From: Macrostomum lignano
Lineage: Eukaryota
Reading direction: 5' to 3'
Assembly (NCBI GenBank): GCA_002269645.1
Contig: NIVC01003103.1
Span: 62,001-126,000, forward strand
Length of the DNA stretch: 64,000 nt
The notes beneath the pieces are model-generated. The model saw only the letters and a program-made list of their open reading frames with translations, was not told the DNA's origin and ran no database searches. The translations under genes were made by a program, and so were the position numbers. Positions 4,216-52,513 of the stretch are shown piece by piece. How positions within the stretch are numbered: the first letter of the stretch is position 1; each line of letters begins with the position of its first letter.

Positions 4216-5160
4216 TTTCTCAACATTCAAGAAAGGGAACTTTGAGCGGACAGGGCATAATTATCAGATATATAGGCGAGGTCAGGGCTGAGTACAGCAG
4301 ATGCTACAAGGTACATTCTAAGCCACACAATTTTACTGCTAGTTTAAGACACTAAGTGGACTTCGCCTTCCAAACAGCACTGCATATTTTTAGCCAAGCT
4401 GTACTGTACTATACGTACAAGGTACTGTAGGCTACATGCATTGCAAAACACAAATTCTATTATTAGCTCTTGCACACGCAATGCTGCAGTTGAACAGTGC
4501 GCTAACAGATTGACATAAAAGCAGATCCGCAAATAATAAACAGTGGATTAAAAGTATAATCACAAAAGAATTTTAAACTCTGTCCTGTTGAGCAAAAGAC
4601 TCAGTAAGACTTTATAAATGCCAATTTAAATAAGTGCAATTTTATTTATAAAAGCGTTAAAAAGCTGACAAAAAGGGCGCACTACATGTACTATTGAGTG
4701 CAATTAACAGACTTGAACAGCGATACAAAAGGTTAAACGCAACCAACATTGGCCGAATGTTTAGGGACAAAAAGTGCACTAAGAACTTATAAAATTGTTT
4801 GAGCCAAAAGAAGAATCTGCCTGCTTGCTTAAAGCGTCATCGATTTGATCCTACAGCACACTCTATTAATATTCCCTAAAATATTGACACAATTTTATTA
4901 CTCTATCATGCGACTGCACTGTTGTCAGATTGGGCCAGGTAACATGCTACAGATGCGCTTATTTACGACCGCATAAAACACCCAACTCACTCAAAACTGA
5001 CCTGATCATATCTCCTGATCATTGGAGCTGGGCTGACAAAAGTATTCGTAAAATTTAAACTGTAGATGTACGATGCGACAAGCATCAAAAGTATATTTAC
5101 CACGGATTGGCGAGCAAGAAGATGATACACTTAGCGATCGATCGAGAGGGACTTCGATAT

Positions 5161-18543: not shown

Positions 18544-19168
18544 GCTGCAGTGTCACTGCTGCGATGTCAGCAGTTCGTCTACCTCGGCGGTCTGGTTCCA
18601 GACGCTCGCGAGGACCTGCGACGCCGCCGCGGGCTTGCCTGGGCTGCCTTTCGTTCTGTGAGGGCAGTCCTGCAGTCCGAGGCCCTACCGGACCGCCAGA
18701 GGGCGGTGCTGTTCCAGGCGGTAATCGAGACTGTCCTGCTGTACAACGCCGAGACCTGGACGCTGACGGACTCACTCGAACAGCAAGTTGATGCGGCGCA
18801 CGCTAGTCTGCTGCGCGCCGCCTTCAACATCGGCGTCGAGCGAGTCACCAATGCGGCACTCTATCGCCGCGCTGGCCTGCCACGTCCAAGTGATCTACTG
18901 CACCGTCGGCGACTCCAGCTCGCAGGCCATCTCATCTGCGCCGAGTCGTACTGCCCACAGCCAGTGCAGGAGGTGCTGCTGCTCACGCTGCAGGCACCCT
19001 ACCGGCGAGGTCAAGCGCAAACTCGGCGTTATGTCAACTGTCTGCTGGCTGACGCCGGCGCCCCGGACACTGCCGGTGGCGCGGCCTTTGTTCACGCCCA
19101 AGCCATGAAGCGCGCCCTGTGACACTGACTTTTACCATCATAACAGCGTATTTTGTTGTTGTTGTTGT
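18544..19168 (+). mobile_element. 5'-truncated non-LTR retrotransposon (RTE-like ORF2 C-terminus)
   Basis: GC-rich island encoding FVYLGG...AWAAF...VLLYNAETWTLT...RRRLQLAGH (post-RT region of LINE ORF2). (TTG)n 3' tail. TSD TGTATAACAT at 18534-18543 and 19169-19178. Confidence 0.88.
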
Positions 19169-25400: not shown

Positions 25401-28400
25401 CCTGCTGCGGCAGATTGAGGCGCAGGGCAACCTAGTGCGCGAGATGAAGGCCGCGAAAGCTGACAACGTGAGGATAATTAGAATGATTCATAAATTCTCC
25501 ATTGTAAACTAGCCATGCGTTTTGGCCTTGCAGATTCACGCGTGTCGCTATCAGCATCTCTCTAACCTTCTCTTTTTGATTAAATACAGAATGCTGTACA
25601 AGTCGAGTTGAAAAAACTGCTGCAGCTCAAGGCGGACTTCAAGTCTCACAGCGGCCAGGACTGGAAGCCCGACCTGCTGCAGAAAGCCTCAGCTGCCGAC
25701 CCAGCAACCGCAGCGGCGCCGCCTCCTCAGGGCTCGGGGCTGCAGCAGTTCAAGCCGCTGCTGGAGAAAATCGCAGCACAAGGCGATCTGGTCAGGGACC
25801 TGAAGGCGAAGAAGGCGGACCAGGTGAGCTGCGTGAGCCTGTTTGAGTAGGGAATTGAGCTGACCAGAGTGATGAACTCACAGTTGCACTGAGACAGCGC
25901 AGTGATGCAAGTCATCTGTGTGCACTCTAATTTTTTTCTGATGCTGGTCGCTCCATCACTTGCAGCAGGCATTCAATTTGTCAATTTAGTTGGGTAACTG
26001 GATGTGTTGCTATGGCATACTCGGCGGTTGTGTTGCTGTGGTAGACTCGGTAACTGGGTGTGTTGCTGTGGTAGACTCGGTATCTAGGTGTGGTGCTTCA
26101 ATGGCTTAAAGTATAACTTGCTCAATTCCGAATGCAATGATGACTCAAAGTCGCACTGATTACACATCTGTAATGATGTCAATCTACCTTTAATTTTACT
26201 GAAGCATTCGGACTCGTCGGTTTGAATTCAGAAAAGTGAACACTGTCGCATTTTTCTTAGAGACGGTCGGCTGTGCGCACACTGGCTGCATTTCAAGCGA
26301 CATGCCGACATTTTCACAATCGGCGAGATTCATTACTGCCCATTCTGCCGACTTCTGTGCAGGCACACACTCACATAGGGGTGCACAGCGGCCCTAAATT
26401 TGTTTATCGATTGGCATGTTCACTTCACTGTGCTTTGGGGGTTGGCCATCAAGTGCGTTAATCGCACGAGCAGACCTAAGCCGAGATTGCAATTTAGAGC
26501 TTAGAATCGAGTCTGAGCTGCTGGCACATCAAAGCGCCGCGCTACGCCAATCAGTGCAGCCGCTCCCCCAACCTCACTGTGAACCTTCAGGCCGCAATCA
26601 AGTCGGCAGTGGACCAGCTACTGCAGCTCAAGGCGGACTTCAAGTCTCACAGCGGTCAGGACTGGAAGCCCGAACTGCTGCAGAAGGCCACCCCTGCCGC
26701 CCCAGCTGCCGCCCCAGCAACCGCAGCGGCGCCGCCTCCTCAGGACTCGGGGCTGCAGCAGTTCAAGCCGCTGCTGGAGAAAATCGCAGCACAAGGCGAT
26801 TTGGTCAGGGACCTAAAGGCAAAGAAGGCGGACCAGGTGAGCTGCGTGAACCTGTTTGAGTAGGGAATTGAGCTGACCATAATGATGAACTCACAGTCGC
26901 ACTGAGACAGCGCAGTGATGCAAGTCATCTGTGCGCACTCTAATTTTTTTCTGATGCTGGTCGCTCTTCTGTTTCTATCGTGCTTTGCTATACTTCAGTT
27001 CTGAAGTCGAGTTCTGTATGTCTTTAATTTAGGTTTCAAGCCGATTTTCCGGCTCAGCCGAGTGCACCAGCTACTTCCACGCCGTTTTGCACTGAAGCAT
27101 TTGAGAATTCAGAGCCACATGCTCTGACAATGCGCTCGTATAGAGAGCTCAGTTAGTTTGAATGGCGCGTGAGCATCAGAGCCACATGCTCTGACAATGC
27201 GCTCGTATAGAGAGCTCAATTAGTTTGAATGGCGCGTGAGCATCAGAGCCACATGCTCTGACAATGCGCTCGTATAGAGAGCTCAATTAGTTTGAATGGC
27301 GCGTGAGCATCAGAGCCACATGCTCTGACAATGCGCTCGTATAGAGAGCTCAATTAGTTTGAATGGCGCGTGAGCATCAGAGCCACATGCTCTGACAATG
27401 CGCTCGTATAGAGAGCTCAATTAGTTTGAATGGTGCGTGAACATCAGAGCCACATGCTCTGACAATGCGCTCGTATAGAGAGCTCAATTAGTTTGAATGG
27501 TGCGTGAACATCAGAGCCACATGCTCTGACAATGCGCTCGTATAGAGAGCTCAATTAGTTTGAATGGTGCGTGAACATCAGAGCCACATGCTCTGACAAT
27601 GCGCTCGTATAGAGAGCTCAATTAGTTTAAATGGTGCGTGAACATCAGAGCGACATGCTCTGACAATGCGCTCGTATAGAGAGCTCAATTAGTTTGAATG
27701 GCGCGTGAGCATCAGAGCCACATGCTCTGACAATGCGCTCGTATAGAGAGCTCAATTAGTTTAAATGGTGCGTGAACATCAGAGCGACATGCTCTGACAA
27801 TGCGCTCGTATAGAGAGCTCAATTAGTTTGAATGGCGCGTGAGCATCAGAGCCACATGCTCTGACAATGCGCTCGTATAGAGAGCTCAATTAGTTTGAAT
27901 GGCGCGTGAGCATCAGAGCCACATGCTCTGACAATGCGCTCGTATAGAGAGCTCAGTTAGTTTGAATGGCGCGTGAGCATCGTGGACCTCGAAGTCGTTT
28001 GGTGCCATCAAATTTATCTGGGGCATGCATTTCTGCTCCTATTGCTGAAGCTGTTCCACCAGATGCTGATATCCAGAGTTGTAAAGCTGCAAGGGGAACA
28101 TGAGCTCAGGATTACCAGAGTATCGCTGAATTCCCGGCGATCCGCAGCCGTCGCCATAGTTATATCCGTCACAACCTTTGTAATTGCCGCATTAAAAGCT
28201 CATTCCTAGTTTGTTGCTCCACGGCTGTTGCATTTCGTCGTCTGACCCAGGTGTTTGGTGTGGGCAATGCACAATTCGAAGAAAGATCATTCACATTCAT
28301 TGTCTGCACGCTGATTTACCGTAGTCTATGGTGAAATATATGTTAAGCCATCTACGAAGTATTTATCATTCAATGCAATTTTAACAACAAAAGTCAGGAA

Positions 28401-30374
28401 TCGGCATCAGAGGGCGTGGCAAATTCTAGGGCCGAGTCGTCGTTATCCGTAGAGGTTGAAGTCGAACTACCTTCGCACAACGAATTCAACAACGCATCAG
28501 ACAGTTGACCCATGTCTGTTGCCTTTCTTTTGCAGTTTGTCGGATAGCTGCAAAAGAATACGCAGTCAGCTAATAGACATACACAAAAATGCTACACACA
28601 AAAGCAGCTGCACCGCCTTAGAGTCCTTGTCTTGAGTTTGCTGATTTGCTCAAAATTTACGGCAAACAAATCATTGAAATTCAGTTGAAGAAAGATTAGA
28701 AAGGCTAGGCCTTTTCTCTCGACTACTCTCAAGGGCTCTATTTTTATTACTCGCCAGTCCCAAGAGTCTGCGCATCAAGAGGTAGGAAAGGAAAGGCCAT
28801 AGACAACAGGTGCAAGCGATGGGGCACGGGTGGTGTTCACAAGAGGCAGTCAAAGCCGTCAGTGTACAAAGCAATGTACATCAAATTTCAGTTGCCGTGA
28901 AACATCTGAACCTAAGCTTCATGCGTATTAATAATAATAAAGCGCTTTGTGTATTTAGCAATTCAATAAGAAACTTGGTTAGGTTAGTAGCTTCAATTTG
29001 TATATTGGTCATTGGAATAAAATCAAGCTGGAGCTGCTATATTGGACTTCGTCGTGAAAAGTTTAGCTGGCCCATGCAGCATAAAACTTGACTACTATGT
29101 CCTCAATTCCGAATGCGATGATGACTCACAGTCGCACTGATTATACACCTGTAATGATGTCAGTCTACCTGTGTGCACTCTCATTTTTTACTGATGCATT
29201 CGGACTCTGTGATTGAAATTCAGAAAAATTAAAAACTTCCGCATTCTGTTGTCCCAGTCAGTGCAGCCGCTCCCCCAACCCGCTGTGAATCTTCAGGCCG
29301 CAATCAAGTCTGCAGTGGACCAGCTGCTGCAGCTCAAGGCGGACTTCAAGTCTCACAGCGGTCAGGACTGGAAGCCCGACTTGCTGCAGAAAGCCTCGGC
29401 TGCCGCCCCAGCAGCCGCAGCGGCGCCTCCTCAGGGCTCAGGGCTGCAGCAGTTCAAGCCGCTGCTGGAGAAAATCGCAGCACAAGGCGATCTGGTCAGG
29501 GACCTGAAGGCAAAGAAGGCGGACCAGGTGAGCTGCGTGAGCCTGTTTGAGTATGGAATTGAGCTGACCAGAGTGATGAACTCACAGTTGCACTGAGACA
29601 GCGCAGTGATGCAAGTCATCTGTGTGCACTCTAATTTTTTTCTGATGCTGGTCGCTCCATCACTTGCATCAGGCATTCAATTTGTCAATTTAGTTGGGTA
29701 ACTGGGTGTGTTGCTATGGGATACTCTGTAACTGGGTGTGTTGCTATGGGATACTCGGTAACTGGGTGTGTTGCTGTGGCAGACTCGGTAACAGGGTGTG
29801 TTGCTATGGCAGACTCGGTAACTAGGTGTGTTGCTATGGAATACTATGGGATATGGGATATCACTTGCTCAATTTCGAATGCAATGATGACTCAAAGTCG
29901 CACTGATTACACACATGTAATGACGTCAATCTACCAATGTACACTCTAATTTTTTACTGATGCATTCGGATTGGGTTGAAAAGTGATTGGTTAAAAGTGG
30001 GACTTGACAATTCCATTCCAGCTGGTCATTGATCCATCCATCTCCGCTATCCTCAGGCGGCGGTGAAGTCTGCTGTTGATCAGTTGCTGGCGCTGAAGGC
30101 GGAGTTCAAGGCCCAGTCCGGCATGGACCACAAGCCGGACCTCATCAAGCAGCTGGACCAGCAGCAGCCGCCGCAGGCAGCAGGCGCTTCCGCCGGCCTG
30201 GACCAGCTGCGGCAGATCAAGGCGGCCGGAGACCGGGTGCGCGCAATGAAGGAGTCCGGCGCTGGCAAGGCAGAACTGCAGCCTGCCTTGGACCAGCTGA
30301 TGCAGGCGAAGGCGCAATTCAAGCAGGCCACGGGCAAAGAGTACAAGCCGGAGATGCTGAAGGCTCTGGCTTGA
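22432..30374 (+). CDS. glutamyl-tRNA synthetase (EPRS N-half: GST-like + GluRS + 5 WHEP domains), terminating at its own stop; 5'-most exon(s) unresolved
   Basis: Exons 22432/22437-22492, 22585-23173, 23444-23636, 23732-23903, 23992-24116, 24211-24566, 24682-25467, 25590-25823, 26591-26836, 29297-29527 and 30057-30374 (TGA). All phases from 22585 onward are consistent. Motifs [45 protein letters not shown] and GWDDPRFPT. Confidence 0.93.
25862..25949 (+). ncRNA. intronic C/D-box snoRNA candidate, type A copy 1
   Basis: C box GTGATGA 25869-25875, D' CTGA 25889, C' GTGATGC 25902, D CTGA 25938-25941. Terminal stem GACCAG/CTGGTC. D guide GCACTCTAATTTTTTT is complementary to conserved 18S GAAAAAAUUAGAGUG. 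Confidence 0.8.
26127..26212 (+). ncRNA. intronic C/D-box snoRNA candidate, type B copy 1 (D guide partly deleted)
   Basis: C ATGATGA 26137, D' CTGA 26156, C' ATGATGT 26173, D CTGA 26199. 9-bp stem TCCGAATGC/GCATTCGGA. The D guide is reduced to TTAATTTTA. Confidence 0.7.
26875..26962 (+). ncRNA. intronic C/D-box snoRNA candidate, type A copy 2
   Basis: C ATGATGA 26882, D' CTGA 26902, C' GTGATGC, D CTGA 26951. Guide GCACTCTAATTTTTTT intact. Confidence 0.8.
27109..27980. repeat. 67-bp tandem repeat, 13 copies, in a GluRS intron
   Basis: Unit TCAGAGCCACATGCTCTGACAATGCGCTCGTATAGAGAGCTCAATTAGTTTGAATGGCGCGTGAGCA. The copies are nearly identical and there are no spacers. Confidence 0.95.
29108..29204 (+). 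ncRNA. intronic C/D-box snoRNA candidate, type B copy 2
   Basis: C ATGATGA 29118, D' CTGA 29137, C' ATGATGT 29154, D CTGA 29191. Stem TCCGAATGC/GCATTCGGA. Guide GCACTCTCATTTTTTA has one mismatch to 18S. Confidence 0.78.
29566..29653 (+). ncRNA. intronic C/D-box snoRNA candidate, type A copy 3
   Basis: C GTGATGA 29573, D' CTGA, C' GTGATGC, D CTGA 29642. Stem GACCAG/CTGGTC. Guide intact. Confidence 0.8.
29875..29970 (+). ncRNA. intronic C/D-box snoRNA candidate, type B copy 3
   Basis: C ATGATGA 29884, D' CTGA, C' ATGACGT, D CTGA 29957. Stem CGAATGCA/TGCATTCG. Guide ACACTCTAATTTTTTA is a perfect complement to AAAAAAUUAGAGUGU. Confidence 0.8.
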
Positions 30375-30894: not shown

Positions 30895-31972
30895 CGCCTC
30901 ACCTTCTCTCATCTATCTCTCTTCTCTCCTCTGACTCCCCTTCTCTCATCACTGACTCTCCCCTTCTCCCATCAATGACTCTCCCCTTCTCTCATCACTG
31001 ACTCTCCCCTTCTGTCATCACTGACCCTCCTCTTCTCCCATCACTGACTCTCCCCTTCTCTCATCACTGACTCTCCCCTTCTCTCATCACTGACTCTCCC
31101 CTTCTCTCATCACTGCCTCTCCCTTCTCTCATCACTGCCTCTCCCCTTCTCTCATCACTGACTCTCCCCTTCTCCCATCAATGACTCTCCCCTTCTCTCA
31201 TCACTGACTCTCCCCTTCTGTCATCACTGACTCTCCCCTTCTCTCATCACTGACTCCCCTTGTCTCATCACTGACTCTCCTCTTCTCTCATCACTGCCTC
31301 TCCCCTTCTCTCATCACTGACTCCCCTTCTCTCATCACTGACTCTTCTCTTCTCTCATCACTGACTCTCCTCTTCTCTCATCACTGCCTCTCCCCTTCTC
31401 TCATCACTGACTCCCCTTCTCTCATCACTGACTCTTCTCTTCTCTCATCACTGACTCTTCTCTTCTCTCATCACTGACTCTCCCCTTCTCTCATCACTGA
31501 CTCCCCTTCTCTCATCACTGACTCTCCCCTTCTCTCATCACTGCCTCTCCCTTCTCTCATCACTGCCTCTCCCCTTCTCTCATCGCTGACTCTCCCCTTC
31601 TCCCATCAATGACTCTCCCCTTCTCTCATCACTGACTCTCCCCTTCTGTCATCACTGACCCTCCCCTTCTCTCATCACTGACTCTCCTCTTCTCTCATCA
31701 CTGACTCTCCCCTTCTCTCATCACTGACTCTCCCCTTCTCTCATCACTGACTCCCCTTCTCTCATCACTGACTCTCCCCTTCTCTCATCACTGACTCCCC
31801 TTCTCTCATCACTGACTCCCCTTCTCTCATCACTGACTCTCCCCTTCTCTCATCACTGACTCTCCCCTTCTCTCATCACTGACTCCCCTTCTCTCATCAC
31901 TGACTCTCCCCTTCTCTCATCACTGACTCTCCCCTTCTCTCATCACTGACTCTCCCTTCTCTCATCACCGAC
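30895..31972. repeat. pyrimidine-rich 22-24-bp minisatellite between the GluRS stop and the ProRS start
   Basis: Unit CTCTCATCACTGACTCTCCCCTTC and 22-bp variants; strongly C/T-biased on the + strand. Confidence 0.95.
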
Positions 31973-32124
31973 TCTCCTCATTGCCATTCTTCATTCCATC
32001 TCTTAAAAGCCCAGCTAACTTTTCTAAATAGTTTTGATTTTGCTCACTAGAGGCATCCGAGTGCAAGTCTCTGACACTACTAACAGTAGTACCCGAATCG
32101 CCCCATGCCGGTGGCAGACGCGAA

Positions 32125-35100
32125 ATGGCTGACGCGGACGCGATTAAGAGTGAAATCGACCAGCTGGGAGACAAGATTCGCGGCTTGAAGGCTGGTGGAG
32201 CCGACAAGTCTGTGGTGGACATGGAGGTGGCCGCACTAAAGGAGCTGAAGCAGCGCTACAAAGACCTCACTGGGGTTGAACTGGCCGGCGGCCGGCCAAA
32301 CAAGAAGGTCAAGGAGGCGGCAAAGCCTCCGGCTGTCCAGGACGACCAGGACGATGCGGGCCGGAAGCACCAGACTCGGCTGGGCATGGAGGCCAGCAAG
32401 GCAGACAACCTGGCTGACTGGTACTCGCAGGTGAGTTCACCGTTGTGACTCGCCCACGCCCCTGAGAATCGCCCCTATCAAACCGCCCCTGAGAATCACC
32501 CATCAAACCGCCCCTGAGAATCGCCCCCATCAAACCGCCCCTGAGAATCACCCATCAAATTGCCCCTGAGAATCGCCCCCATCAAACCGCCCCTGAGAAT
32601 CGCCCCCATCAAACCGCCCCTGAGAATCACCCATCAAATCGCCCCTGAGAATCGCCCTTATCGAACCGCCCCTGAGAATCGCCCCCATCAAACCGCCCCT
32701 GAGAATCGCCCCCATCAAACCGCCCCTGAGAATCGCCCCCATCAAACCGCCCCTGAGAATCGCCCCCATCAAACCGCCCCTGAGAATCGTCCCCATCAAA
32801 CCGCCCCTGAGAATCGCCCCAATCAAACCGCCCCTGAGAATCGCCCCAATCAAACCGCCCCTGAGAATCGCCCCCATCAAACCGCCCCTGAGAATCGCCC
32901 CAATCAAACCGCCCCTGAGAATCGCCCCAATCAAACCGCCCCTGAGAATCGCCCCCATCAAACCGCCCCTGAGAATCGTCCCCATCAAACCGCCCCTGAG
33001 AATCGCCCCATCAAACCGCCCCTGAGAATCGCCCCCATCAAACCGCCCCTGAGAATCGTCCCCATCAAACCGCCCCTGAGAATCGCCCCCATCAAACCGC
33101 CCCTGGGAATCACCCCTATCAAACCGCCCCTGAGAATCGCCCCAATCAAACCGCCCCTGAGAATCGTCCCCATCAAACCGCCCCTGAGAATCGTCCCCAT
33201 CAAACCGCCCCTGAGAATCGCCCCCATCAAACCGCCCCTGAGAATCGCCCCCATCAAACCGCCCCTGAGAATCGCCCCCATCAAACCGCCCCTGGGAATC
33301 ACCCCTATCAAACCGCCCCTGAGAATCGCCCCCATCAAACCGCCCCTGAGAATCGCCCCCATCAAACCGCCCCTGAGAATCACCCCCATCAAACCGCCCC
33401 TGAGAATCGCCCCCATCAAACCGCCCCTGAGAATCGTCCCCATCAAACCGCCCCTGAGAATCGCCCCCATCAAACCGCCCCTGAGAATCGCCCCCATCAA
33501 ACCGCCCCTGAGAATCGCCCCCATCAAACCGCCCCTGAGAATCGCCCCCATCAAACCGCCCCTGGGAATCACCCCTATCAAACCGCCCCTGAGAATCGCC
33601 CCAATCAAACCGCCCCTGAGAATCGTCCCCATCAAACCGCCCCTGAGAATCGCCCCCATCAAACCGCCCCTGAGAATCGCCCCCATCAAACCGCCCCTGA
33701 GAATCACCCATCAAATCGCCCCTGAGAATCGCCCTTATCGAACCGCCCCTGAGAATCGCCCCCATCAAACCGCCCCTGAGAATCGCCCCCATCAAACCGC
33801 CCCTGAGAATCGCCCCCATCAAACCGCCCCTGAGAATCGTCCCCATCAAACCGCCCCTTAGAATCGCCCCAATCAAACCGCCCCTGAGAATCGCCCCAAT
33901 CAAACCGCCCCTGAGAATCGCCCCCATCAAACCGCCCCTGAGAATCGCCCCAATCAAACCGCCCCTGAGAATCGCCCCAATCAAACCGCCCCTGAGAATC
34001 GCCCCCATCAAACCGCCCCTGAGAATCGTCCCCATCAAACCGCCCCTGAGAATCGCCCCCATCAAACCGCCCCTGAGAATCGCCCCCATCAAACCGCCCC
34101 TGAGAATCGCCCCCATCAAACCGCCCCTGGGAATCACCCCTATCAAACCGCCCCTGAGAATCGCCCCCATCAAACCGCCCCTGAGAATCGCCCCCATCAA
34201 ACCGCCCCTGAGAATCACCCCAATCAAACCGCCCCTGAGAATCGCCCCCATCAAACCGCCCCTGAGAATCGTCCCCATCAAACCGCCCCTGAGAATCGCC
34301 CCCATCAAACCGCCCCTGAGAATCGCCCCATCAAACCGCCCCTGAGAATCGTCCCCATCAAACCGCCCCTGAGAATCGCCCCATCAAACCGCCCCTGGGA
34401 ATCACCCCTATCAAACCGCCCCTGAGAATCGCCCCAATCAAACCGCCCCTGAGAATCGTCCCCATCAAACCGCCCCTGAGAATCGCCCCCATCAAACCGC
34501 CCCTGAGAATCGCCCCCATCAAACCGCCCCTGAGAATCACCCATCAAATCGCCCCTGAGAATCGCCCTTATCGAACCGCCCCTGAGAATCGCCCCCATCA
34601 AACCGCCCCTGAGAATCGCCCCCATCAAACCGCCCCTGAGAATCGCCCCCATCAAACCGCCCCTGAGAATCGTCCCCATCAAACCGCCCCTGAGAATCGC
34701 CCCAATCAAACCGCCCCTGAGAATCGCCCCAATCAAACCGCCCCTGAGAATCGCCCCCATCAAACCGCCCCTGAGAATCGCCCCAATCAAACCGCCCCTG
34801 AGAATCGCCCCAATCAAACCGCCCCTGAGAATCGCCCCCATCAAACCGCCCCTGAGAATCGTCCCCATCAAACCGCCCCTGAGAATCGCCCCCATCAAAC
34901 CGCCCCTGAGAATCGCCCCCATCAAACCGCCCCTGAGAATCGTCCCCATCAAACCGCCCCTGAGAATCGCCCCCATCAAACCGCCCCTGGGAATCACCCC
35001 TATCAAACCGCCCCTGAGAATCGCCCCAATCAAACCGCCCCTGAGAATCGTCCCCATCAAACCGCCCCTGAGAATCGCCCCCATCAAACCGCCCCTGAGA

Positions 35101-38100
35101 ATCGCCCCCATCAAACCGCCCCTGAGAATCGTCCCCATCAAACCGCCCCTGAGAATCGCCCCCATCAAACCGCCCCTGGGAATCACCCCTATCAAACCGC
35201 CCCTGAGAATCGCCCCAATCAAACCGCCCCTGAGAATCGTCCCCATCAAACCGCCCCTGAGAATCGCCCCCATCAAACCGCCCCTGAGAATCGCCCCCAT
35301 CAAACCGCCCCTGAGAATCGCCCCATCAAACCGCCCCTGAGAATCGCCCCCATCAAACCGCCCCTGAGAATCGCCCCCATCAAACCGCCCCTGAGAATCA
35401 CCCCCATCAAACCGCCCCTGAGAATCGCCCCCATCAAACCGCCCCTGAGAATCGTCCCCATCAAACCGCCCCTGAGAATCGCCCCCATCAAACCGCCCCT
35501 GAGAATCGCCCCCATCAAACCGCCCCTGAGAATCGCCCCCATCAAACCGCCCCTGAGAATCGCCCCCATCAAACCGCCCCTGGGAATCACCCCTATCAAA
35601 CCGCCCCTGAGAATCGCCCCAATCAAACCGCCCCTGAGAATCGTCCCCATCAAACCGCCCCTGAGAATCGCCCCCATCAAACCGCCCCTGAGAATCGCCC
35701 CCATCAAACCGCCCCTGAGAATCACCCATCAAATCGCCCCTGAGAATCGCCCTTATCGAACCGCCCCTGAGAATCGCCCCCATCAAACCGCCCCTGAGAA
35801 TCGCCCCCATCAAACCGCCCCTGAGAATCGCCCCCATCAAACCGCCCCTGAGAATCGTCCCCATCAAACCGCCCCTGAGAATCGCCCCAATCAAACCGCC
35901 CCTGAGAATCGCCCCAATCAAACCGCCCCTGAGAATCGCCCCCATCAAACCGCCCCTGAGAATCGCCCCAATCAAACCGCCCCTGAGAATCGCCCCAATC
36001 AAACCGCCCCTGAGAATCGCCCCCATCAAACCGCCCCTGAGAATCGTCCCCATCAAACCGCCCCTGAGAATCGCCCCCATCAAACCGCCCCTGAGAATCG
36101 CCCCCATCAAACCGCCCCTGAGAATCGTCCCCATCAAACCGCCCCTGAGAATCGCCCCCATCAAACCGCCCCTGGGAATCACCCCTATCAAACCGCCCCT
36201 GAGAATCGCCCCAATCAAACCGCCCCTGAGAATCGTCCCCATCAAACCGCCCCTGAGAATCGCCCCCATCAAACCGCCCCTGAGAATCGCCCCCATCAAA
36301 CCGCCCCTGAGAATCGTCCCCATCAAACCGCCCCTGAGAATCGCCCCCATCAAACCGCCCCTGGGAATCACCCCTATCAAACCGCCCCTGAGAATCGCCC
36401 CAATCAAACCGCCCCTGAGAATCGCCCCCATCAAACCGCCCCTGAGAATCACCCCCATCAAACCGCCCCTGAGAATCGCCCCCATCAAACCGCCCCTGAG
36501 AATCGTCCCCATCAAACCGCCCCTGAGAATCGCCCCCATCAAACCGCCCCTGAGAATCGTCCCCATCAAACCGCCCCTGAGAATCGCCCCCATCAAACCG
36601 CCCCTGAGAATCGCCCCCATCAAACCGCCCCTGAGAATCGCCCCCATCAAACCGCCCCTGAGAATCGCCCCCATCAAACCGCCCCTGAGAATCGCCCCCA
36701 TCAAACCGCCCCTGAGAATCGCCCCCATCAAACCGCCCCTGAGAATTGCCCCCATCATACCGCCCCTGAGAATCGCCCCCATCAAACCGCCCCTGGGAAT
36801 CACCCCTATCAAACCGCCCCTGAGAATCGCCCCCATCAAATCACCCTTGAGAATCGCCCCCATCAAACCGCCCCTGAGAATCGCCCCCATCAAACCGCCC
36901 CTGAGAATCGCCCCCATCAAACCGCCCCTGAGAATCGCCCCGATCAAACCGCCCCTGAGAATCGCCCCCATCAAACCGTCCCTGAGAATCGCCCCCATCA
37001 AACCGCCCCTGGGAATCACCCCCATCAAATCACCCTTCAGAATCGCCCCTGTCAAATTGAACTTCTGAATCACCCCCATCAAACTACCCCTGAGAATCGC
37101 CCATCAAACCGCACCTGGGAACGCTCATCAAACCTCTCTCAATAAAAATCCCACCGCAGGTGATAACAAAGTCGGAGCTCATTGAGTATTACGACATATC
37201 GGGATGCTACATCCTGCGCCCTTGGGCCTACTCAATCTGGGAGATGGTGCAGCGCTACGTTGACGACCGCATCAAGGGCATGGGAGTGCAGAATGTCTAT
37301 TTCCCCATGTTCGTGTCGAACGCTGCTCTGGAGAAGGAGAAAACCCACATCACCGACTTCGCTCCCGAGGTTGCATGGGTGACGCGGAGCGGCCGGTCCG
37401 ACCTGGCCGAGCCCATCGCCATCCGGCCAACCTCCGAGACCGTCATGTACCCGTCATTTGCCAAGTGGATCCAGAGCTACAGGGACCTGCCGCTCAAGGT
37501 TAACCAGTGGAACAACGTTGTCAGGTGGGAGTTCAAGCACCCGCAGCCGTTCCTGCGCACCAGGGAGTTCCTCTGGCACGAGGGCCACACGGCGTTTGCC
37601 ACGCGGGAGGAGGCGGAGGTGGAGGTGAGCAATTACCGAATGCTGGCGAACACATTTGAGAAAATTTGAACACCTGTGTAACATTATGTGGAATTTTTAT
37701 TTGGGATCTAGCCTCTGGGATCGGAGATCTGGGATCGGAGATCTGGGATCGGAGATCTGGGATCGGAGATCTGGGATCGGAGATCTGGGATCGGAGATCT
37801 GGGATCGGAGATCTGGGATCGGAGATCTGGGATCGGAGATCTGGGATCGGAGATCTGGGATCGGAGATCTGGGATCGGAGATCTGGGATCGGAGATCTGG
37901 GATCGGAGATCTGGGATCGGAGATCTGGGATCGGAGATCTGGGATCGGAGATCTGGGATCGGAGATCTGGGATCGGAGATCTGGGATCGGAGATCTGGGA
38001 TCGGAGATCTGGGATCGGAGATCTGGGATCGGAGATCTGGGATCGGAGATCTGGGATCGGAGATCTGGGATCGGAGATCTGGGATCGGAGATCTGGGATC

Positions 38101-39495
38101 GGAGATCTGGGATCGGAGATCTGGGATCGGAGATCTGGGATCGGAGATCTGGGATCGGAGATCTGGGATCGGAGATCTGGGATCGGAGATCTGGGATCTG
38201 GGACCTCATTAACGCAACCAGCCCGCCGCTGCCGTCCGCCCAGGTGATGGAGATCCTGGCCATGTACGAATACGTGTACGAGAATCTGATGGCCGTCCCG
38301 GTCATCAAGGGCCGCAAGACCGAAAAGGAGAAGTTCGCCGGCGGCGACTACACCACTACCGTGGAGGTGTACATCGGCGCCAGCGGTCGCGCAATCCAGG
38401 GCGCCACCAGCCACCACCTGGGCCAGAACTTCTCCCAAATGTTCGACATCGTGTTCGAGGACCCGGCCACCGGCGAGAAGCGCCACGTACACCAGAACTC
38501 CTGGGCAATCACCACCCGGTCCATCGGCGTCATGGTGATGGTCCACGGTGACGACAAAGGCCTGGTGCTGCCGCCCCGCCTGGCCGCCCACCAGCTGGTG
38601 CTGGTGCCCTGCGGCCTCACCGTGCGCACAACCGAGGAGGCGAAGCGCGCCCTGCTGGACAAGTGCAATTCGCTAGCTGCCGAGCTGCGCGCCTGCGGCC
38701 TGCGGGTGCACGCGGACCTGCGAGAGCACTACTCGCCCGGCTGGAAGTTCAACCACTGGGAGCTCAAGGGAGTCCCAGTCAGGATCGAAGTTGGGCCAAG
38801 GGACATGGCGGCCAAGCAGGTGCGTTCGCTGCTTCTTTTACTAACCCATCGATCTCATCCCAATCTCATCCATCCCAATCTCACCCATCCCAAACTCACC
38901 CCATCTCAATCTCACCCCATCTCAATCTCATCCATCCCAATCTGATCCCATCCCAATCTCACCCATCCCAATCTCACCCATCCAAATCTCATCCATCCAA
39001 ATCTCATCCATCCCAATCTCATCCATCCAAATCTCATCCATCCCAATCTTACCCTGACCCGAACCCGCACTCTCCATACCGAAGGTGGTGGCGGCCATCC
39101 GGTACTCCGGTGAGAAGCGCACCCTGCCAGAGGAGGGCCTGGCCGCCAGTCTGCAGGCCCTGCTGGACTCGGTGCAGTCCGAGATGTTCGCCCGCGCCAA
39201 GGCGGAGCAGGACGCGCGCCTGTCCGTGTGCCCGGACCTGGCCTCCCTGTGCGCCGCACTGGACAAGCAGCACCTCATCCTGGCGCCATTCTGCGGCGAC
39301 CCCGACTGCGAGGACCTCATCAAGAAGGACAGCGCGCGCAACGCCATTGTGGAAGAGGGCGTCCCGTCCATGGGCGCCAAGAGTTTGTGCATCCCCTTCA
39401 ACCAGCCGGACGAGATCGGGCCGGACACAAAGTGCGTGCATTCCCATTGCGGCCGCAAGCCCCAATTCTACACCCTGTTCGGCCGCAGCTACTGA
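32125..39495 (+). CDS. prolyl-tRNA synthetase (EPRS C-half) with one N-terminal WHEP domain, 585 aa
   Basis: Exons 32125-32430 (ATG), 37160-37624, 38244-38819 and 39085-39495 (TGA), all phase 0, total 1758 nt. Motifs [54 protein letters not shown] and the C-terminal LFGRSY. Confidence 0.95.
32455..37120. repeat. 27-bp minisatellite (~170 copies) filling ProRS intron 1
   Basis: Unit GAGAATCGCCCCCATCAAACCGCCCCT, with 26-bp variants that shift ORF frames. Confidence 0.97.
37716..38198. repeat. 14-bp tandem repeat (~34 copies) in ProRS intron 2
   Basis: Unit GGGATCGGAGATCT, essentially homogeneous. Confidence 0.97.
38850..39050. repeat. ~15-bp C-rich tandem repeat in ProRS intron 3
   Basis: Unit ATCTCA(T/C)CCATCCCA and variants. 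Confidence 0.88.
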
Positions 39496-42376: not shown

Positions 42377-43977
<1,601 letters not shown>

Positions 43978-47112: not shown

Positions 47113-50100
47113 CTACTGGCGCAGACTCCGCAGACTCTCGAGAGCCTCCTTCTCGCTGACGCTCTTCCAAGCGACCGGTAAATTATCGACAGGCTTTTTG
47201 TAGTACTCGCCAAGTTCTTTGACAAACGTTGCGCAGAACCACATCCAGAACTTGTTCCCGAAGTTACTTGGGTCTGGCTTGATATCCCAATTTGGGAAGA
47301 AATCCTTGTAGTTCTTGAACGGATGATATTTTTCCGCCTCTTCGCCTTCGGGTGCACATGATGAGGTTTTTACACTGTGCTTCCGGCAAGTGATGCAGCA
47401 AAAGCCCCACCCGCCACAGGATACCTGCCATTCGCAATTTCGAAATACAAGTTGTTTTGAATCCTTTTCGTGCCTCCCTCTGGCGCCCTGCGGTCTGTGC
47501 TGAATGCAGGTGTGAGGCGTTTTTTCGTTTTCATAGTGGTTGGCATCGTCTTTGCTGCATGGCTCAGAGCAGAATGGGCACTGCGCTGTGCAGCCCCAAA
47601 AACTCTTTAAAACCAGACGGTTGAGGGTTTCGCCCTGTGAGTCGCGATCAACTTCATAGATGGTAGTAAATTTGTACTTTTCTATTGTTTGCACTCTGAT
47701 TTGCTCAATCGCTGGTCGAAAAAAGTCAGTAAAGTCGGAAAGGTCGATGTTAGAGTCATTTGATGGCAAAGCCGTCTCCAAATCCTGTGGAATAACTGCC
47801 AGCTCGGATTCCACATTCTCACAAAATTTCACAATCCACTGCTTCAGAGAGCCTGAAGACTCAGTGTGAGCTTTCTCATCAGCTCTGGTAACAACAACAA
47901 GTATGGGATCGAGTAGCTCTCTCGCAGCTGCTAACAGTCTGCTTTCATCGCTTGATGACGGCTTTTGTGACAGAAACTCGGGAATAAACTGGTCAAGCCA
48001 ATTCAGAGCAGCTGTCTCAGACTTGACAACATACCGCAATATTTTTTTGAACTTTCTCTTTCGTGAAAAGTCGTCCAGAATTCTCACGATCAGGTGAAAC
48101 TTTCCGTTTCCGATCTCGGCGATCAGCTTGGACTTCAGCTTCTCCTTCAGTCGCTGGTTGATTGCATCCTGTATCACTTTCTTCAGGTGGTCCCTGACAT
48201 AATCAGCTGCAATCTTGGCTCCACTCTGTCTCCGAACCATGTTGAAGAACATGTTCCTGATGCGCTCTTTGATTTTGTCAGTTTTTGCCTTGATGCTGCA
48301 GCTGTCACGAAACCGTTGGTCGAATTCGACAAAGTGCGGATAGGCATAACGAAGAGCCAAAATGACCACCTTGATTTCGAAAATGATGGTGGTGGTAGCT
48401 CTCTTAAAGTCGGTCAATTCTCGATTTAGACCATCAGCAACAACCTTCTGAACTCGGCTTGCATCAGTCTCTTCGAACCATCTGGTTGATTTGGAAATGT
48501 CGGCAACTTCTGTTTTAACTTGACGAAACACCCTGTTGCTGATTTCAGTCAGTTCACTTTTTGCTTCGTCCTTAGCATTTTCATTGGGGTCAGAGAAAAT
48601 GAATCCCCCGGTAAAAGTACTGCCAAACTGTTGAGCTCTTTCCCTCTTTTTTAAGCGAATTTCAAAGAAGGAGTTATTGTCATTTTCAAAAAGCTGCTGC
48701 TCTGTCAGATCCGAAATCTCTTCCGCACGGCTTCCAGAGCAATGCTCGAAATTGAATTGATCAAGGTAGTCCCGTATCACTTGCCTCTCCTTAGGATAGC
48801 ATTCGCGAAGGAAATTTTCGATTCTCGACAAAACCGATTCGCCATACTCTATCCTTTCAGGAGGCAAGTCGCCCAAAAACTTTTTCCAAAGGCTTTCAAA
48901 CTTTTTCTCTACTTCATCATCAGGGCAGCCTTCGGGCATCTCTTCTGCAGCCTTTCTGGCCTCACTATTAATGGCTCTCTCCCACTGGCTCTGCTTCGAT
49001 TTCTGTTCTGTCTCAAGCAGCTGCAGGTCACAGAACTGGTCCAGCTTCCTCGTGACTTCACCACCCAGCGACCTCACGTACTCAGACAGAGAATTGGCCT
49101 TGTTTGACTTCCACTGAATCGTCTGCTCACTGTAGGGGTTTTCGTCAAAGAATTTCATCAAACGGTCCATTCCATTTGTCTCACAATTGTCTTGTAGACG
49201 GTGCAGCTCTATCCTCAGCCTTTCCTTTGTTTGCTGAACACTTTCGGAAGTGGTGCATTTCTGGAGCTGGATTGACGCAGTCTTTGTCAGCCACTCATTG
49301 AGTTGGACGTCGCACCGACGCTTTACATCAAAGAATTCTGACTCCATGAGATTGTAGGCCTTCATCTCGATGCTGTTTCGAAAGCTGAACACAAAGTCTT
49401 CGGACATGATGGCCGTCCACAGGTCCTTGATGCGGAGAGCAAAGTCATCAAATCCAAGAAAAGTCTTGTGCTTTTCATCCAGACAATGCAAAATGTGGGT
49501 TTTGATCTCAGTTACTTTGTGCGAATATCCGGGGTTCACTGGTGCCATCGGAGGGTCTCCCAGCCACAAGTCCGACATGTAGAAAATATCTTTGTCACTG
49601 TCGAACGAGATAATGTCAGAGAAGCAGCGAACACTCGCAACCTTCTCTCCTTCGGCGGCTTCTCTTGTGATTTTGTCCAAGTCCTCCTGCATCTTGCAAT
49701 TCTGATCCATCATTTTCTCCTTCGCTCCAACTGCGGGCACATTCTGGTGAACAAAGATACACCTTCTGCGCAGATCCTGCATCCTGTTCGCCATCTTCAT
49801 TCTGATGAAGGCATGAACCACAATCTGCAGAATGTCTTTTATCTCTGCGCTGTTCTCGCCCTTCAGATTGATCACAGTGACATCGCCCAAACCTAAAACA
49901 AGTGTGGCGAGCTCGTTGTCATGACGATACTTGTCAAGTCCGAGCTCAGGCGCCCTGAGTCCCTCAGTGTCGATCACGGCCACAAAGTCGAACTTACTCG
50001 AGCCAGGTTCGACAGGAACGAGCTGTAGAAAGGCGCCTCGAGTGCAGCGACCGGCGCTCACTGCGAACTTCAGTCCGAACATGGTGTTGAGCAGAGTGGA

Positions 50101-52513
50101 CTTGCCTGAGCTCTGCAGTCCGAGTACGGAGACCGCCAAAATATTCTTCTGTCCCACAAGCTGCTTACAGTGAGTGAGCACAGAGGTCACCCAGGTGAGA
50201 GGAATGTTGCTAGCATCGCCGTCCAGAATCTCCAAGGGAATTCCCCAGAGCAGAAGGCGCGCAAAAACTTCTGGAAGAATTTCTGATTCACAACCAAAAG
50301 TTTTGTCGGTATCGTTCAGAGAACATGTGGCTTCAAAAAACTGACCGACTTCTCTGAAGACATTTTCCATGCCAATGGACATTTCGAGAATTGTTTTCTC
50401 AACTTGCCTGAGTGAATAATCAAATTTCTTTTGTAACTCGGTGCTAGTGCACTTCTCTACATCCTCAGCAGCTGAAACGGTATCCTTCTGTTGAAAAATA
50501 CTCTGCAGTTGAGTGCGGATATCTTTGCGATTCCTGTGAAGGTCTGGAAGCTTCTTCCTGGAGATTTCATCAAATAACAGCTTTTCCCATTGGATGAGAA
50601 GCTGTACAGGCAGGCCGCCTTCCGATTTCAAACAGCTGTTCGTTAACTGCTGCACAAAGTCTTTCATGAAAGCACTCAAATTTCTGCACCTTGCGATTTG
50701 GGTTGTCCTTTTCTCAGCTTTCTGTCTTTGGATTTCTTGAAGATCTTTTTTCTCGGCTTTGGAAGAGTTCTCTTTCTTGTGAAGCTGGCTGTACTCCATC
50801 CAGATTGCTTGGAGGGGAAGATGCTTTGTCTTGAATTCGTGCATCTCGGAATCGCTGCAATTCATGTGCTCAATTACCTTAAACGCAGATGTCCTTGACT
50901 CTGCAAGAACATGGTTGCATTCGTCTGTTTCAAAGGAGGCATTTTGATTTAATGCAGTCAGTTTCAGGCCCTCGGTTTCAGCTAGAAGACTTTCTAGTTT
51001 CTTTGAGATCTCACTGAGCAACTGTGTCTCGTTCTTAGACTTCATTCCTCGAAACGCCCAAATTATTTCCTTAGGCAGCGATTTAAAGTCGATCTCCTCT
51101 GCCTTAACCAATCTATCTTCTTTTTTAAACACAATGAGCAGCACCTGTCGATGCCTCAATATATTAATGGCTTGTAGAACTTCAGAGCTCTCCAGTGCTT
51201 TGATTTCGACCATCAGAACAACAATATCTGCCACCTGCGCAACAGCCTGGAACTCCTTGCTATGCTCAAGCAGATCGCCTCGAAGATTTGCCAGCACAAA
51301 GGCTTTGCTGAATGTGCTCGATGGGCCTTCCGACGGCAGGAAAACTGTGGCCTCTACCAACCCGTTTGTGCATTGTCGTCTGACGTCTCCGTTGTTGCAG
51401 TCGTGGTGGAAAAACGTATCCAAACTGCTCTTGAACAAAAGGCTGTTCAGCAGCTTCGACTTGGAGGTGCCGATCTCTCCAATTCGAGCAAAGCAGACGA
51501 CGGGAAAAGGGTGCTCGGAGACCAGACTCGTTTCCAGATACCGACCCTGACTGTCTCGGTATTCAACTACGATGTCTCTGAGGTTCCACTGACTCAGAGT
51601 GAGTTGACCCTCACGGTCACTGTAGATGAATGGAAATGCGAGCTTGCAGGTGAACAGAGCTTTGCACAGGATCTGCTGCACCTCAGGATCGCAGCAGAGA
51701 AAGCACGCCTGAAGAACGTCCATCGGATTAAGCGAATCTGGACTTTCGAAATCACAGAAAGGGTCTTCAGCTTCTGGCTCCGTGTCTTTCTTAGCAATTG
51801 ATATGTCTCTTGCAGTCCTATCGTAAGCAAGAAGACCTCTGAGAACAGTCCAACCCAGCCGATCAATTTCTGTTTTTTTAGGCTCCTGAAAACTGTCACT
51901 GTAGAGTCGCACAACGTCTGAGAATGAAAATTTCTGTTTGATGCTTTTCAGCTGCAGCAACTTTATCACTTTAAGAATCGCTGTTGGGGTATCACCATTG
52001 AAAGCACCACTGCTGTCTTCCTCGGTCATCTCATGACTGGCATCTTTGGCGACAGCCTCGCCCTTTCCCTCAGTCTCCTCATGACTGGAATCTTTGACGA
52101 CATCCTCGCCCTTTCCCTCAGTCTCCTCATGACTCGAATCTTTGACGACATCCTAGCCCTTTCCCTCAGTCTCCTCATGACTCGAATCTTTGACGACATC
52201 CTCGCCCTTTCCCTCAGTCTCCTCATGACTCGAATCTTTGGCGACAGCCTCGCCCTTTTCTTCAGTCTTATTTTTACTACTTGCGTCTTTGGCCACATGT
52301 CGCTGCCTTCTTCTTGATTGCCTCGCTTTTACGTTGAAGCAACAGAAGCTTAAACTGATTTTTCTCGAAGCTTCCGCTGTCTCCATGAGCCCTAGAATGT
52401 AAATTAGTCAGTCAGTCATTACAGTAGTATTAAAAAGACAAAAAAAGAACAAGTTCAGGGAACTCACCTGCAGCCTCCTCGGTCTCGCCGTCTTGAATGA
52501 GACCCTCAGCCAT
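47113..52513 (-). CDS. very large inducible GTPase (VLIG/GVIN1-URGCP-like); the spliced frame has one in-frame TAG, and an intact 1638-aa ORF runs from ATG 52029
   Basis: G1 GLQSSGKSTLLN, G2 region FAVSAGRCTRG, G3 DTEG, HDNELAT, and a C-terminal GCTAQCPFC...HRPQG motif. Exon 1 52513-52468 (G|GTGAGT) joins 52391 in phase 1. 5'UTR intron 52655-52585. TAG at 52155-52153. Confidence 0.85.
52030..52270 (-). repeat. 48-bp coding tandem repeat (EETEGKGEDVVKDSSH) at the VLIG N-terminus
   Basis: Four to five copies visible in the sequence; one copy has GAG changed to TAG. Confidence 0.9.

Follow-up and report, generated by a model that had tools for sequence, protein, structure and literature searches.

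Six probable box C/D snoRNA paralogues with a predicted 18S rRNA target in the introns of a Macrostomum lignano glutamyl-tRNA synthetase gene

The glutamyl-tRNA synthetase (GluRS) gene on contig NIVC01003103.1 of the flatworm Macrostomum lignano carries a tail of WHEP repeats, and three consecutive introns of this gene, flanked by WHEP-encoding exons, each hold two short elements with the look of small nucleolar RNA (snoRNA) genes. The locus thereby raises the question of what these elements are, which RNA they would guide and how one synthetase gene came to contain six of them. From the sequence of the window (the whole 64-kb stretch of the contig that was analysed), we consider it likely that they are six paralogous, intron-encoded box C/D snoRNA genes with an 18S rRNA guide function, and that they arose by duplication.

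Anatomy of the six intronic elements

25861–25950, + strand: putative snoRNA A1, 90 nt, terminal stem GACCAG/CTGGTC; box C 25870–25875, D′ guide 25876–25888, box D′ 25889–25892, box C′ 25903–25908, 18S guide up to 25937, box D 25938–25941
26127–26212, + strand: putative snoRNA B1, 86 nt; 18S guide gone, other parts (boxes, 9-bp stem, D′ guide) intact
26874–26963, + strand: putative snoRNA A2, 90 nt; four differences from A1, 6-bp stem
29108–29204, + strand: putative snoRNA B2, 97 nt; 10-bp stem, C/U mismatch at position 9 of the 18S guide
29565–29654, + strand: putative snoRNA A3, 90 nt; same sequence as A1
29874–29970, + strand: putative snoRNA B3, 97 nt; 10-bp stem including one U·G pair, C′ box TGACGT

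The original prediction had described six C-D′-C′-D elements with terminal stems, two per intron, and all of them were found, in the order 5′ stem arm, TGATGA, 12–13 nt, CTGA, 10–14 nt, C′ box, 19–30 nt, CTGA and 3′ stem arm. Box C ((G/A)TGATGA) and box D (CTGA) are present in every copy, as is a D′ CTGA 12–13 nt past box C, and the C′ box reads TGATG(C/T) in all copies except B3. The terminal stems of the two types differ entirely in sequence and are each perfectly paired, with 6–7 bp (GACCAG/CTGGTC) in type A and 9–10 bp (CCGAATGC/GCATTCGG) in type B. The spacers between D′ and C′ are likewise unrelated, that of type B containing a 5-bp hairpin, which leaves only the boxes and two guide regions in common. 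A dual-guide snoRNA under selection would be expected to show just such a likeness, confined to boxes and guides while the stems differ yet remain paired. Minimum free energy folds predict that the terminal stem is retained in all six elements and that the 18S guide is single-stranded in five, the 5′ part of the B2 guide being predicted to pair. Judged by sequence, all six elements qualify as box C/D snoRNAs.

A strict scan of both strands of the 64 kb for RTGATGA followed by CTGA 45–125 nt on, closed by a terminal stem of 5 bp or more, gave five matches, all of them among the six elements and in the same orientation as the host gene; block-shuffled sequences averaged 0.12 matches and never exceeded two. 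A2 was missed because a G>T change cuts its stem to 6 bp with an offset outside the scan. The comparison with Rfam that the original prediction had suggested assigned no family, as the whole window is without a match at the gathering threshold. A permissive Rfam scan of positions 25700–30100 returned only sub-threshold generic C/D matches and spurious matches in coding repeats, the best by E-value being SNORD87 (21.8 bits, threshold 50) and SNORD43 (18.6 bits, threshold 45), both generic box matches.

We propose the following route, in which (i) splicing would be followed by debranching of the introns and exonucleolytic trimming, which would free the snoRNAs; (ii) Snu13, Nop56, Nop58 and fibrillarin would bind to the terminal stem together with the C/D kink-turn, protecting the ends; and (iii) fibrillarin would 2′-O-methylate the 18S nucleotide opposite guide position 5.

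The guide next to box D and its predicted target

Directly before box D, five of the six elements carry CACTCT(A/C)ATTTTTT, a motif that occurs nowhere else in the window and that, at up to two mismatches, was matched five times against 0.78 expected; these are the same five copies to which the original prediction had assigned it. The guide formed in this way abuts box D, is 14–16 nt long, and thus longer than 10 nt, and is antisense to the 18S rRNA segment GAAAAAAUUAGAGUGU. All 120 real 18S contigs among the matches listed (at least 120) contain its complement, GAAAAAAUUAGAGUG(U); they are metagenomic rDNA contigs that were retrieved with a probe containing the target segment itself. The guide itself suggests that the 18S rRNA of M. 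lignano keeps this consensus segment. In an unbiased screen, in which every CTGA in the window was compared with 11-mers common to at least eight of the 120 rDNA contigs listed, a guide match was combined with a box C in these elements only. Four other CTGA matches (5033+, 17175+, 52458− and 10137−, with about 1.7 expected by chance) have no box C and were rejected; on inspection, the site at 5033+ also lacks a stem.

Against the 18S contigs, the guides of A1–A3 form 14 Watson–Crick and two G·U pairs, that of B3 forms 15 contiguous Watson–Crick pairs and that of B2 forms 13 with one internal mismatch, while B1 has lost its guide through an 11-nt gap. The claim of a five-copy 18S guide therefore stood as far as the antisense match is concerned, but only four copies (A1, A2, A3 and B3) are perfect. 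We predict that these four are fully competent for 18S guiding, that B2 is impaired by its mismatch and that B1 no longer guides at this site. Guide position 16 is G in type A and B2 (G·U) and A in B3 (A–U), and the variation within the guides preserves pairing.

A unique flank, AAUUAGAGUG, fixes the register of the duplex, so that guide position 5 lies opposite the fourth A of an A6 run in both types, the shared target that had originally been proposed for them. We predict 2′-O-methylation at this adenosine from the pairing. Counting from box D, the first six pairs are A–U throughout, and the duplex around the target is therefore weak. We take the target to correspond to A755 in yeast, where the run would span 752–757, and to A811 in human. 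To our knowledge, the site belongs to neither the human nor the yeast list of 2′-O-methylated (Nm) positions, in line with the first impression that it is not a standard one; with the 18S sequences used, every site of both lists fell on the correct base, including 11 of 11 known sites in yeast. Neither the published Nm map of Drosophila nor that of Arabidopsis contains it, the latter having Am780, Am796, Am801 and Am812 and nothing at about 757–762.

In their RUGAUGA and CUGA boxes, D′/C′ motifs, terminal stem, length (86–97 nt), intronic position in the sense direction of a host gene related to translation and 14–16-nt rRNA antisense at box D, the elements resemble canonical box C/D guides such as human SNORD and yeast snR RNAs. 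In contrast to these, they match no Rfam family and their target is unmapped as an Nm site in the four species just named. Yeast snR53 and Arabidopsis snoR53Y (18S Am796 and Am801) are likewise C/D guides for an adenosine in the central domain region of 18S rRNA. Orthology with them was rejected, as the predicted target A755 is 41 nt upstream of yeast A796, which we place in AUAUUAGCAUGG. The target hairpin is also served by H/ACA guides, namely yeast snR80 (Ψ759) and snR161 (Ψ766), with Ψ814, Ψ815 and Ψ822 in human. The conserved segment on which these act, GAAAAAAUUAGAGUGUU, is the same, but they are of another class and pseudouridylate U residues rather than methylating the A run. Our literature search found no paper on M. 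lignano snoRNAs or on EPRS-hosted snoRNAs, and a full-text search for guide and target sequences gave primers and constructs that were mostly unrelated, a few apparent 18S primers and one snR30 paper.

The second guide and roles other than methylation

All six elements keep a further guide of 12–13 nt upstream of D′, (A)CUCA(C/A)AGU(C/U)GCA, which the original prediction had missed and which is conserved across both types to the same degree as the guide at box D. Its position 4 is C or U (C in A2, U in A1), either of which can pair with G. No recurrent site for it was detected, with G·U pairs and mismatches allowed, among the 120 listed metagenomic rDNA contigs, of which 4–24 covered parts of the 28S rRNA. 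Nor was a target found in the 250 nt upstream or the 60 nt downstream of the A run; in the window, the guides alone gave matches. An informal check showed no match in U1, U2, U4, U5, U6, 5.8S rRNA or a few tRNAs.

These observations bear on the question of whether the elements could form real C/D snoRNPs that do something other than methylate the A run, either because the 18S pairing serves as a chaperone for pre-rRNA folding or processing near expansion segment 6 (ES6), or because the D′ guide is the functional one and has a non-rRNA target. Such roles would agree with the equally conserved D′ guide lacking an rRNA target among the 120 listed contigs, with the all-A–U duplex near box D and with a predicted site that is unmodified in yeast and human, as far as we know their lists, and in Drosophila and Arabidopsis. 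The target segment also adjoins the ES6 region where snR30/U17 acts. Against this, the guide sits at box D in canonical geometry with the 14–16 bp of pairing typical of methylation guides, and lineage-specific Nm sites are common, with several each in Drosophila and Arabidopsis. We therefore regard a role without methylation of the A run as distinctly improbable and retain 18S methylation guiding as the predicted function.

Host gene and duplication history

25590–25823, + strand: WHEP exon, 78 aa, preceding the A1/B1 intron
25824–26590, + strand: intron, 767 nt, with A1, a 30-bp minisatellite (25993–26097) and B1
26591–26836, + strand: WHEP exon, 82 aa
26837–29296, + strand: intron, 2460 nt, with A2, a 67-bp satellite in 13 copies (27109–27981), further sequence of about 1.1 kb, and B2
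29297–29527, + strand: WHEP exon, 77 aa
29528–30056, + strand: intron, 529 nt, with A3, the 30-bp minisatellite again (29697–29845) and B3
30057–30374, + strand: last GluRS exon, about 1.5 WHEP repeats, stop codon TGA at 30372–30374

A translation-machinery gene belongs to the usual class of snoRNA hosts. All three introns are GT..AG introns in phase 0, and each holds two elements, compared with one snoRNA per intron as the vertebrate rule. Between B1 and the 3′ splice site are 378 nt, and B2 and B3 end 92 and 86 nt before theirs, a spacing close to the optimum of vertebrate intronic C/D snoRNAs. Amplification of the snoRNAs along with the WHEP exons, as first proposed, is borne out by the collinearity of exon, intron start and snoRNA A, which form one duplicated block. 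Across the exon–intron border, 300-nt blocks are 85% and 97% identical, the latter value applying to units 1 and 3, which carry A1 and A3, and the reading frame is kept through all units, giving five Pfam WHEP repeats. We propose that an ancestral intron already contained both diverged types, with A near the 5′ and B near the 3′ splice site, and that tandem duplication of the exon and intron unit would have tripled the A/B pair while adding WHEP repeats. WHEP expansion with a gain in snoRNA dosage as its by-product would be one of the two directions in which cause and effect could run.

Searches with the protein sequences of the GluRS tail, an open reading frame running from the exon into snoRNA A3, and ProRS found nothing closer than about 50–65% identity. 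Two inspected matches to the GluRS tail (about 41% identity) come from compact, intron-poor genomes. The open reading frame of the last ProRS exon had no match on look-up, and a 585-aa ProRS reconstruction was left unused because it is 5 aa off the 590-aa model on record.

With A1 and A3 identical in sequence, the copy count could be inflated by an assembly artefact, by gene conversion or by a duplication of recent date, the M. lignano genome and its assembly being repeat-rich and neopolyploid. Both this background and the 97% identity of units 1 and 3 would suit haplotypes or homeologs mis-assembled in tandem, if the elements were not simply chance combinations of motifs. However, the middle unit and all B copies clearly differ from one another and the frame is kept across the five WHEP repeats, while chance would have to account for five strict-scan matches where 0.12 are expected and for 15 nt, placed at box D, that exactly complement a universal segment of rRNA. 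Artefact or chance is thus very hard to credit as an explanation.

It is also conceivable, though in our judgement unlikely, that the pair is genuine and most copies are decaying by-products of duplication, with one or two active and no real gain in dosage. B1, which is 11 nt short in the 18S guide and 378 nt away from its 3′ splice site, the internal guide mismatch of B2 and the mutated C′ box of B3 all point in this direction, and since A1 and A3 are identical within 97%-identical flanks, their integrity is uninformative on selection. Yet the C, D and D′ boxes are perfect and the terminal stems kept in all six elements, the guide is perfect in four, and substitutions in stems and guides retain pairing (C>U giving U·G; G or A opposite U). 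At the other extreme, a joint reading would combine a lineage-specific Am in the universally conserved 18S A6 run of Macrostomum, and perhaps of flatworms more widely, with a snoRNA family unknown elsewhere, a D′ guide directed at a non-rRNA or lineage-specific target, and selection on dosage, instead of on additional WHEP repeats, that helped to fix the duplications, such that snoRNAs shaped the domain architecture of a synthetase; we hold this combination to be rather doubtful.

If confirmed, the duplicated genes would give a flatworm used as a regeneration model a snoRNA family that has not been annotated, and its rRNA modification map a predicted Nm site that is new and located in a universally conserved 18S hairpin. 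The find is tidy but unsurprising, the elements being of the ordinary box C/D methylation-guide type, and it leaves the view of snoRNA function and evolution unchanged, as snoRNAs in introns are well known to duplicate within a gene, and Nm sites specific to one lineage are equally familiar. Tandem units of exon, intron and snoRNA occur in the mammalian SNORD115/116 arrays, in GAS5 and SNHG genes and in the Drosophila Uhg genes, and snoRNAs are known to duplicate in cis into neighbouring introns of one host gene. As in those arrays, the paralogues described here would have arisen by local exon–intron duplication followed by individual divergence or decay, visible in the defects of B1 and B2. 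Unlike in those arrays, it is coding exons that were duplicated here, and an aminoacyl-tRNA synthetase gains a WHEP repeat from each. One duplication event therefore alters both the protein linker and the snoRNA copy number, which would make the locus a clean example of a single tandem duplication changing the number of WHEP repeats together with that of a ribosome-modifying guide RNA.

Box C/D anatomy of the six intronic elements

The six plus-strand elements, which fall into types A and B and lie two to an intron in a glutamyl-tRNA synthetase (GluRS) gene, are supported by their sequence features as members of the methylation-guide class of box C/D snoRNAs; their 18S rRNA target is predicted to be a lineage-specific one, and their second guide is an orphan.

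Intronic elements as parsed by their boxes
A1: 25861-25950, plus strand, type A snoRNA, 90 nt
A2: 26874-26963, plus strand, type A snoRNA, 90 nt
A3: 29565-29654, plus strand, type A snoRNA, 90 nt
B1: 26127-26212, plus strand, type B snoRNA, 86 nt
B2: 29108-29204, plus strand, type B snoRNA, 97 nt
B3: 29874-29970, plus strand, type B snoRNA, 97 nt

This parse bears out the original prediction of six such snoRNAs in coordinates, sizes and box order alike. All six run 5′ arm, TGATGA, 12-13 nt, CTGA, spacer, C′, guide region, CTGA and 3′ arm. The C′ box reads TGATGC or TGATGT (TGACGT in B3), the D′-C′ spacer measures 10 nt in type A and 14 nt in type B, and the stretch from C′ to box D spans 29-30 nt, or 19 nt in B1. 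The terminal arms pair over 7 bp in A1 and A3, 6 bp in A2, 9 bp in B1 and 10 bp in B2 and B3. Across both strands of the window, five loci matched a pattern of RTGATGA, CTGA 45-125 nt further on and a terminal stem of 5 bp or more; every one is among these elements (shuffled sequences: mean 0.12, maximum 2), and none lies on the minus strand. MFE folds contained the terminal stem in 6/6 elements and left the 3′ guide single-stranded in five, the exception being B2, whose guide is predicted to be paired in its 5′ portion. Folding-energy z-scores were -0.5 to -0.9 for type A and B3, -3.8 for B1 and -2.5 for B2; unremarkable values such as those of type A and B3 are usual among C/D snoRNAs.

Conservation of two guides and the predicted 18S target

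Common to types A and B are the four boxes and two further stretches, one of 12-13 nt ahead of D′ and one of 15-16 nt ahead of D. The stretch before D′ is ACUCACAGU(C/U)GCA in type A versus CUCA(C/A)AGUCGCA in type B. The terminal stems are unrelated in sequence (GACCAG/CUGGUC in type A versus CCGAAUGC/GCAUUCGG in type B), as are the D′-C′ spacers. The type B spacer can form a 5-bp hairpin, UUACA/UGUAA, in which a C>U change in B2 yields a U.G pair; a C>U change in the terminal stem of B3 likewise retains pairing as U.G. Judged from sequence comparison, this pattern is the trace that would be expected of selection on a dual-guide C/D RNA, and, A and B being old paralogues, recent duplication cannot account for it.

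The 18S sample consisted of metagenome contigs matching the probe TTTGAAAAAATTAGAGTGTTCAAAGC (at least 120, of which 120 were used), and the conserved segment facing the guide that abuts box D is GAAAAAAUUAGAGUG. The type A guide GUGCACUCUAAUUUUUUU forms 14 Watson-Crick pairs with 18S GAAAAAAUUAGAGUGU, plus a G.U pair at each end. In B3, position 16 carries A rather than G, so that an A-U pair replaces the distal wobble and 15 Watson-Crick pairs follow one another without a break, position 1 being unpaired; in B2 the C at position 9 faces U as an internal mismatch. The B1 guide is short by 11 nt; its remnant could pair over at most 10 bp, nearly all A-U and shifted by two nucleotides, and we regard it as non-functional. 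Since the unique part AAUUAGAGUG sets the register, the U run cannot slip, and guide position 5 faces the fourth A of the A6 run in types A and B alike, as had been claimed. In an unbiased screen, the 11-mer adjacent to each CTGA in the window was compared with the complements of 11-mers present in 8 or more of the 120 rDNA contigs; a guide match with an upstream box C was found in A1, A2, A3 and B3 only, B2 being missed by this exact screen because of its internal mismatch. Four further matches in the window were without box C, a number that fits chance.

We take the A run to be yeast 752-757 and human 808-813, which would place the predicted target at A755 and A811, respectively. In the 18S sequences assumed here, 11/11 yeast and 39/39 human known Nm sites fall on the right base, with the correct human length of 1869 nt. 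To our knowledge, neither A755 nor A811 figures among the yeast and human Nm sites. snR53 (Am796) was ruled out as the guide's counterpart, A796 lying in AUAUUAGCAUGG, on the assumed numbering 41 nt downstream of A755. The original prediction's view that the site is not among the standard ones holds in four species, namely yeast and human, as far as we know their lists, and Drosophila and Arabidopsis, on published maps. On the Drosophila map, Um586 is followed by Am1061 without an 18S Nm site in between (PMC11014333), and the Arabidopsis 18S map has Am623, Am780, Am796, Am801 (the equivalent of yeast 796), Am812 and Am978, with none near 757-762 (PMC8583080).

The second antisense element, which precedes D′ and was not mentioned in that prediction, is as conserved between A and B as the 18S guide and has the form (A)CUCA(C/A)AGU(C/U)GCA. 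Both variants of the C/U polymorphism at position 4 are compatible with a target G; the C/A variation at position 8 is non-neutral. Among the matches listed in the 120 rDNA contigs (4-24 with 28S landmarks), no complement was recurrent, and none occurred near the 18S A run or in the window. Because no complement recurs in the contigs, the D′ target would be another RNA or would sit in a region of the rRNA or pre-rRNA that is lineage-specific. In B1 (26143-26149) and B3 (29890-29896), the D′ guide includes UCAAAGU, which matches as a complement the ACUUUGA immediately 5′ of the 18S A run; this 7-bp pairing is interrupted in the four remaining copies and is probably a coincidence.

The host gene and the duplication of exon-intron units

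The plus strand around the snoRNAs codes for the C-terminal portion of a class I GluRS, followed by WHEP repeats.

Host exons, separated by GT..AG phase-0 introns
up to 25467, plus strand, GluRS exon
25590-25823, plus strand, GluRS exon
26591-26836, plus strand, GluRS exon
29297-29527, plus strand, GluRS exon
30057-30374, plus strand, GluRS exon with TGA end

The spliced product contains two GluRS/GlnRS anticodon-binding domains and five WHEP-TRS repeats (Pfam), and G+C is 61-65% in the exons versus 39-48% in the introns. Each intron interrupts a WHEP repeat after K(A/K)KADQ, so that every exon joins the back half of one repeat to the front half of the following one. Protein searches with the GluRS tail, the exon-to-A3 ORF and the neighbouring ProRS returned nothing closer than approximately 50-65% identity, in a set seemingly without Macrostomum proteins.

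The snoRNA-bearing introns, each with two sense-strand elements, are those following exons 25590-25823, 26591-26836 and 29297-29527. In all three, the type A element starts 38 nt downstream of the 5′ splice site. B2 and B3 end 92 and 86 nt upstream of the 3′ splice site, close to the reported vertebrate optimum for splicing-coupled assembly of C/D snoRNPs, and B1, the copy without an 18S guide, sits 378 nt from it. The presence of two snoRNAs per intron implies that type A, at least, matures independently of a vertebrate-like 3′ spacing.

Direct repeats comprise 300-nt blocks over the exon-intron boundary and snoRNA A (25705-26004, 26718-27017 at 85% and 29409-29708 at 97% identity) and blocks over the intron end and exon start (71-90%); in the same analysis, the three B copies share 69-89% identity. 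A1 and A3 are identical, and A2 departs at four positions. These blocks indicate that a unit of exon plus [A, spacer, B] intron was tripled in tandem, which supports the proposal that the snoRNAs were amplified together with the WHEP exons. The snoRNA gain could be either a by-product or a driver of the duplication. Identity between the first unit and the third is 97%, which may reflect recent duplication, gene conversion or mis-assembly in a neopolyploid genome. Our literature search turned up no account of snoRNAs from M. lignano or within EPRS genes, and the six are new, unannotated members of an ordinary methylation-guide class. Their route of multiplication is the well-known local host-gene duplication, which here lengthened the WHEP linker of a protein as well.

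Between A and B, the first and third introns only carry a 30-bp minisatellite, GGTAACTGGGTGTGTTGCTGTGGTAGACTC (25993-26097 and 29697-29845; 3.6 and 5 copies). In their place, the middle intron has a satellite of 67-bp units (27109-27981, 13 copies at 97% identity), each unit with an inverted repeat TCAGAGC...GCTCTGA, and about 1.1 kb of other sequence.

Neighbouring genes and repeats

GluRS ends at an in-frame TGA (30372-30374) after its five WHEP repeats, and ProRS, with a WHEP repeat of its own, begins on the same strand at ATG 32125, 1.75 kb downstream; the public gene index lists ProRS as a separate 590-aa product. The arrangement resembles an EPRS that has split with its two halves remaining side by side. 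Alternative splicing may still yield a fused GluRS-ProRS isoform, or the two may form a trans-spliced operon, the frame being open from 32038 to the ProRS ATG. Unlinked ERS (six WHEP) and PRS (one WHEP) were described only in Caenorhabditis, and the Schistosoma EPRS as linked and without WHEP (Ray & Fox 2014, PMC4072531).

Most of the GluRS-ProRS intergenic space is occupied by a 23-bp tandem repeat, CTCCCCTTCTCTCATCACTGACT (30931-31977, about 46 copies). The first ProRS intron (32431-37159) consists nearly throughout of a short tandem array (32450-37100) that creates long artificial ORFs on both strands (GAILRGGLM... and DSQGRFDG...), and a second array (37700-38230) lies in the following ProRS intron. 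Upstream of GluRS, an ORF fragment at 18550-19122 resembles, by eye, the C-terminal portion of a reverse transcriptase from a non-LTR retrotransposon. On the minus strand, 47113-52029 holds a single-exon gene of 1638 aa with URGCP/GVIN1 very-large-GTPase domains. Its ORF has exactly one occurrence among public records, on NIVC01003103.1 of GCA_002269645.1, an assembly that several papers link to the Mlig_3_7 genome of Macrostomum lignano, a free-living flatworm. On the same strand, the translation of 42377-43693 reads by eye as an alpha-tubulin exon, where the gene index has a Tubulin_C product.
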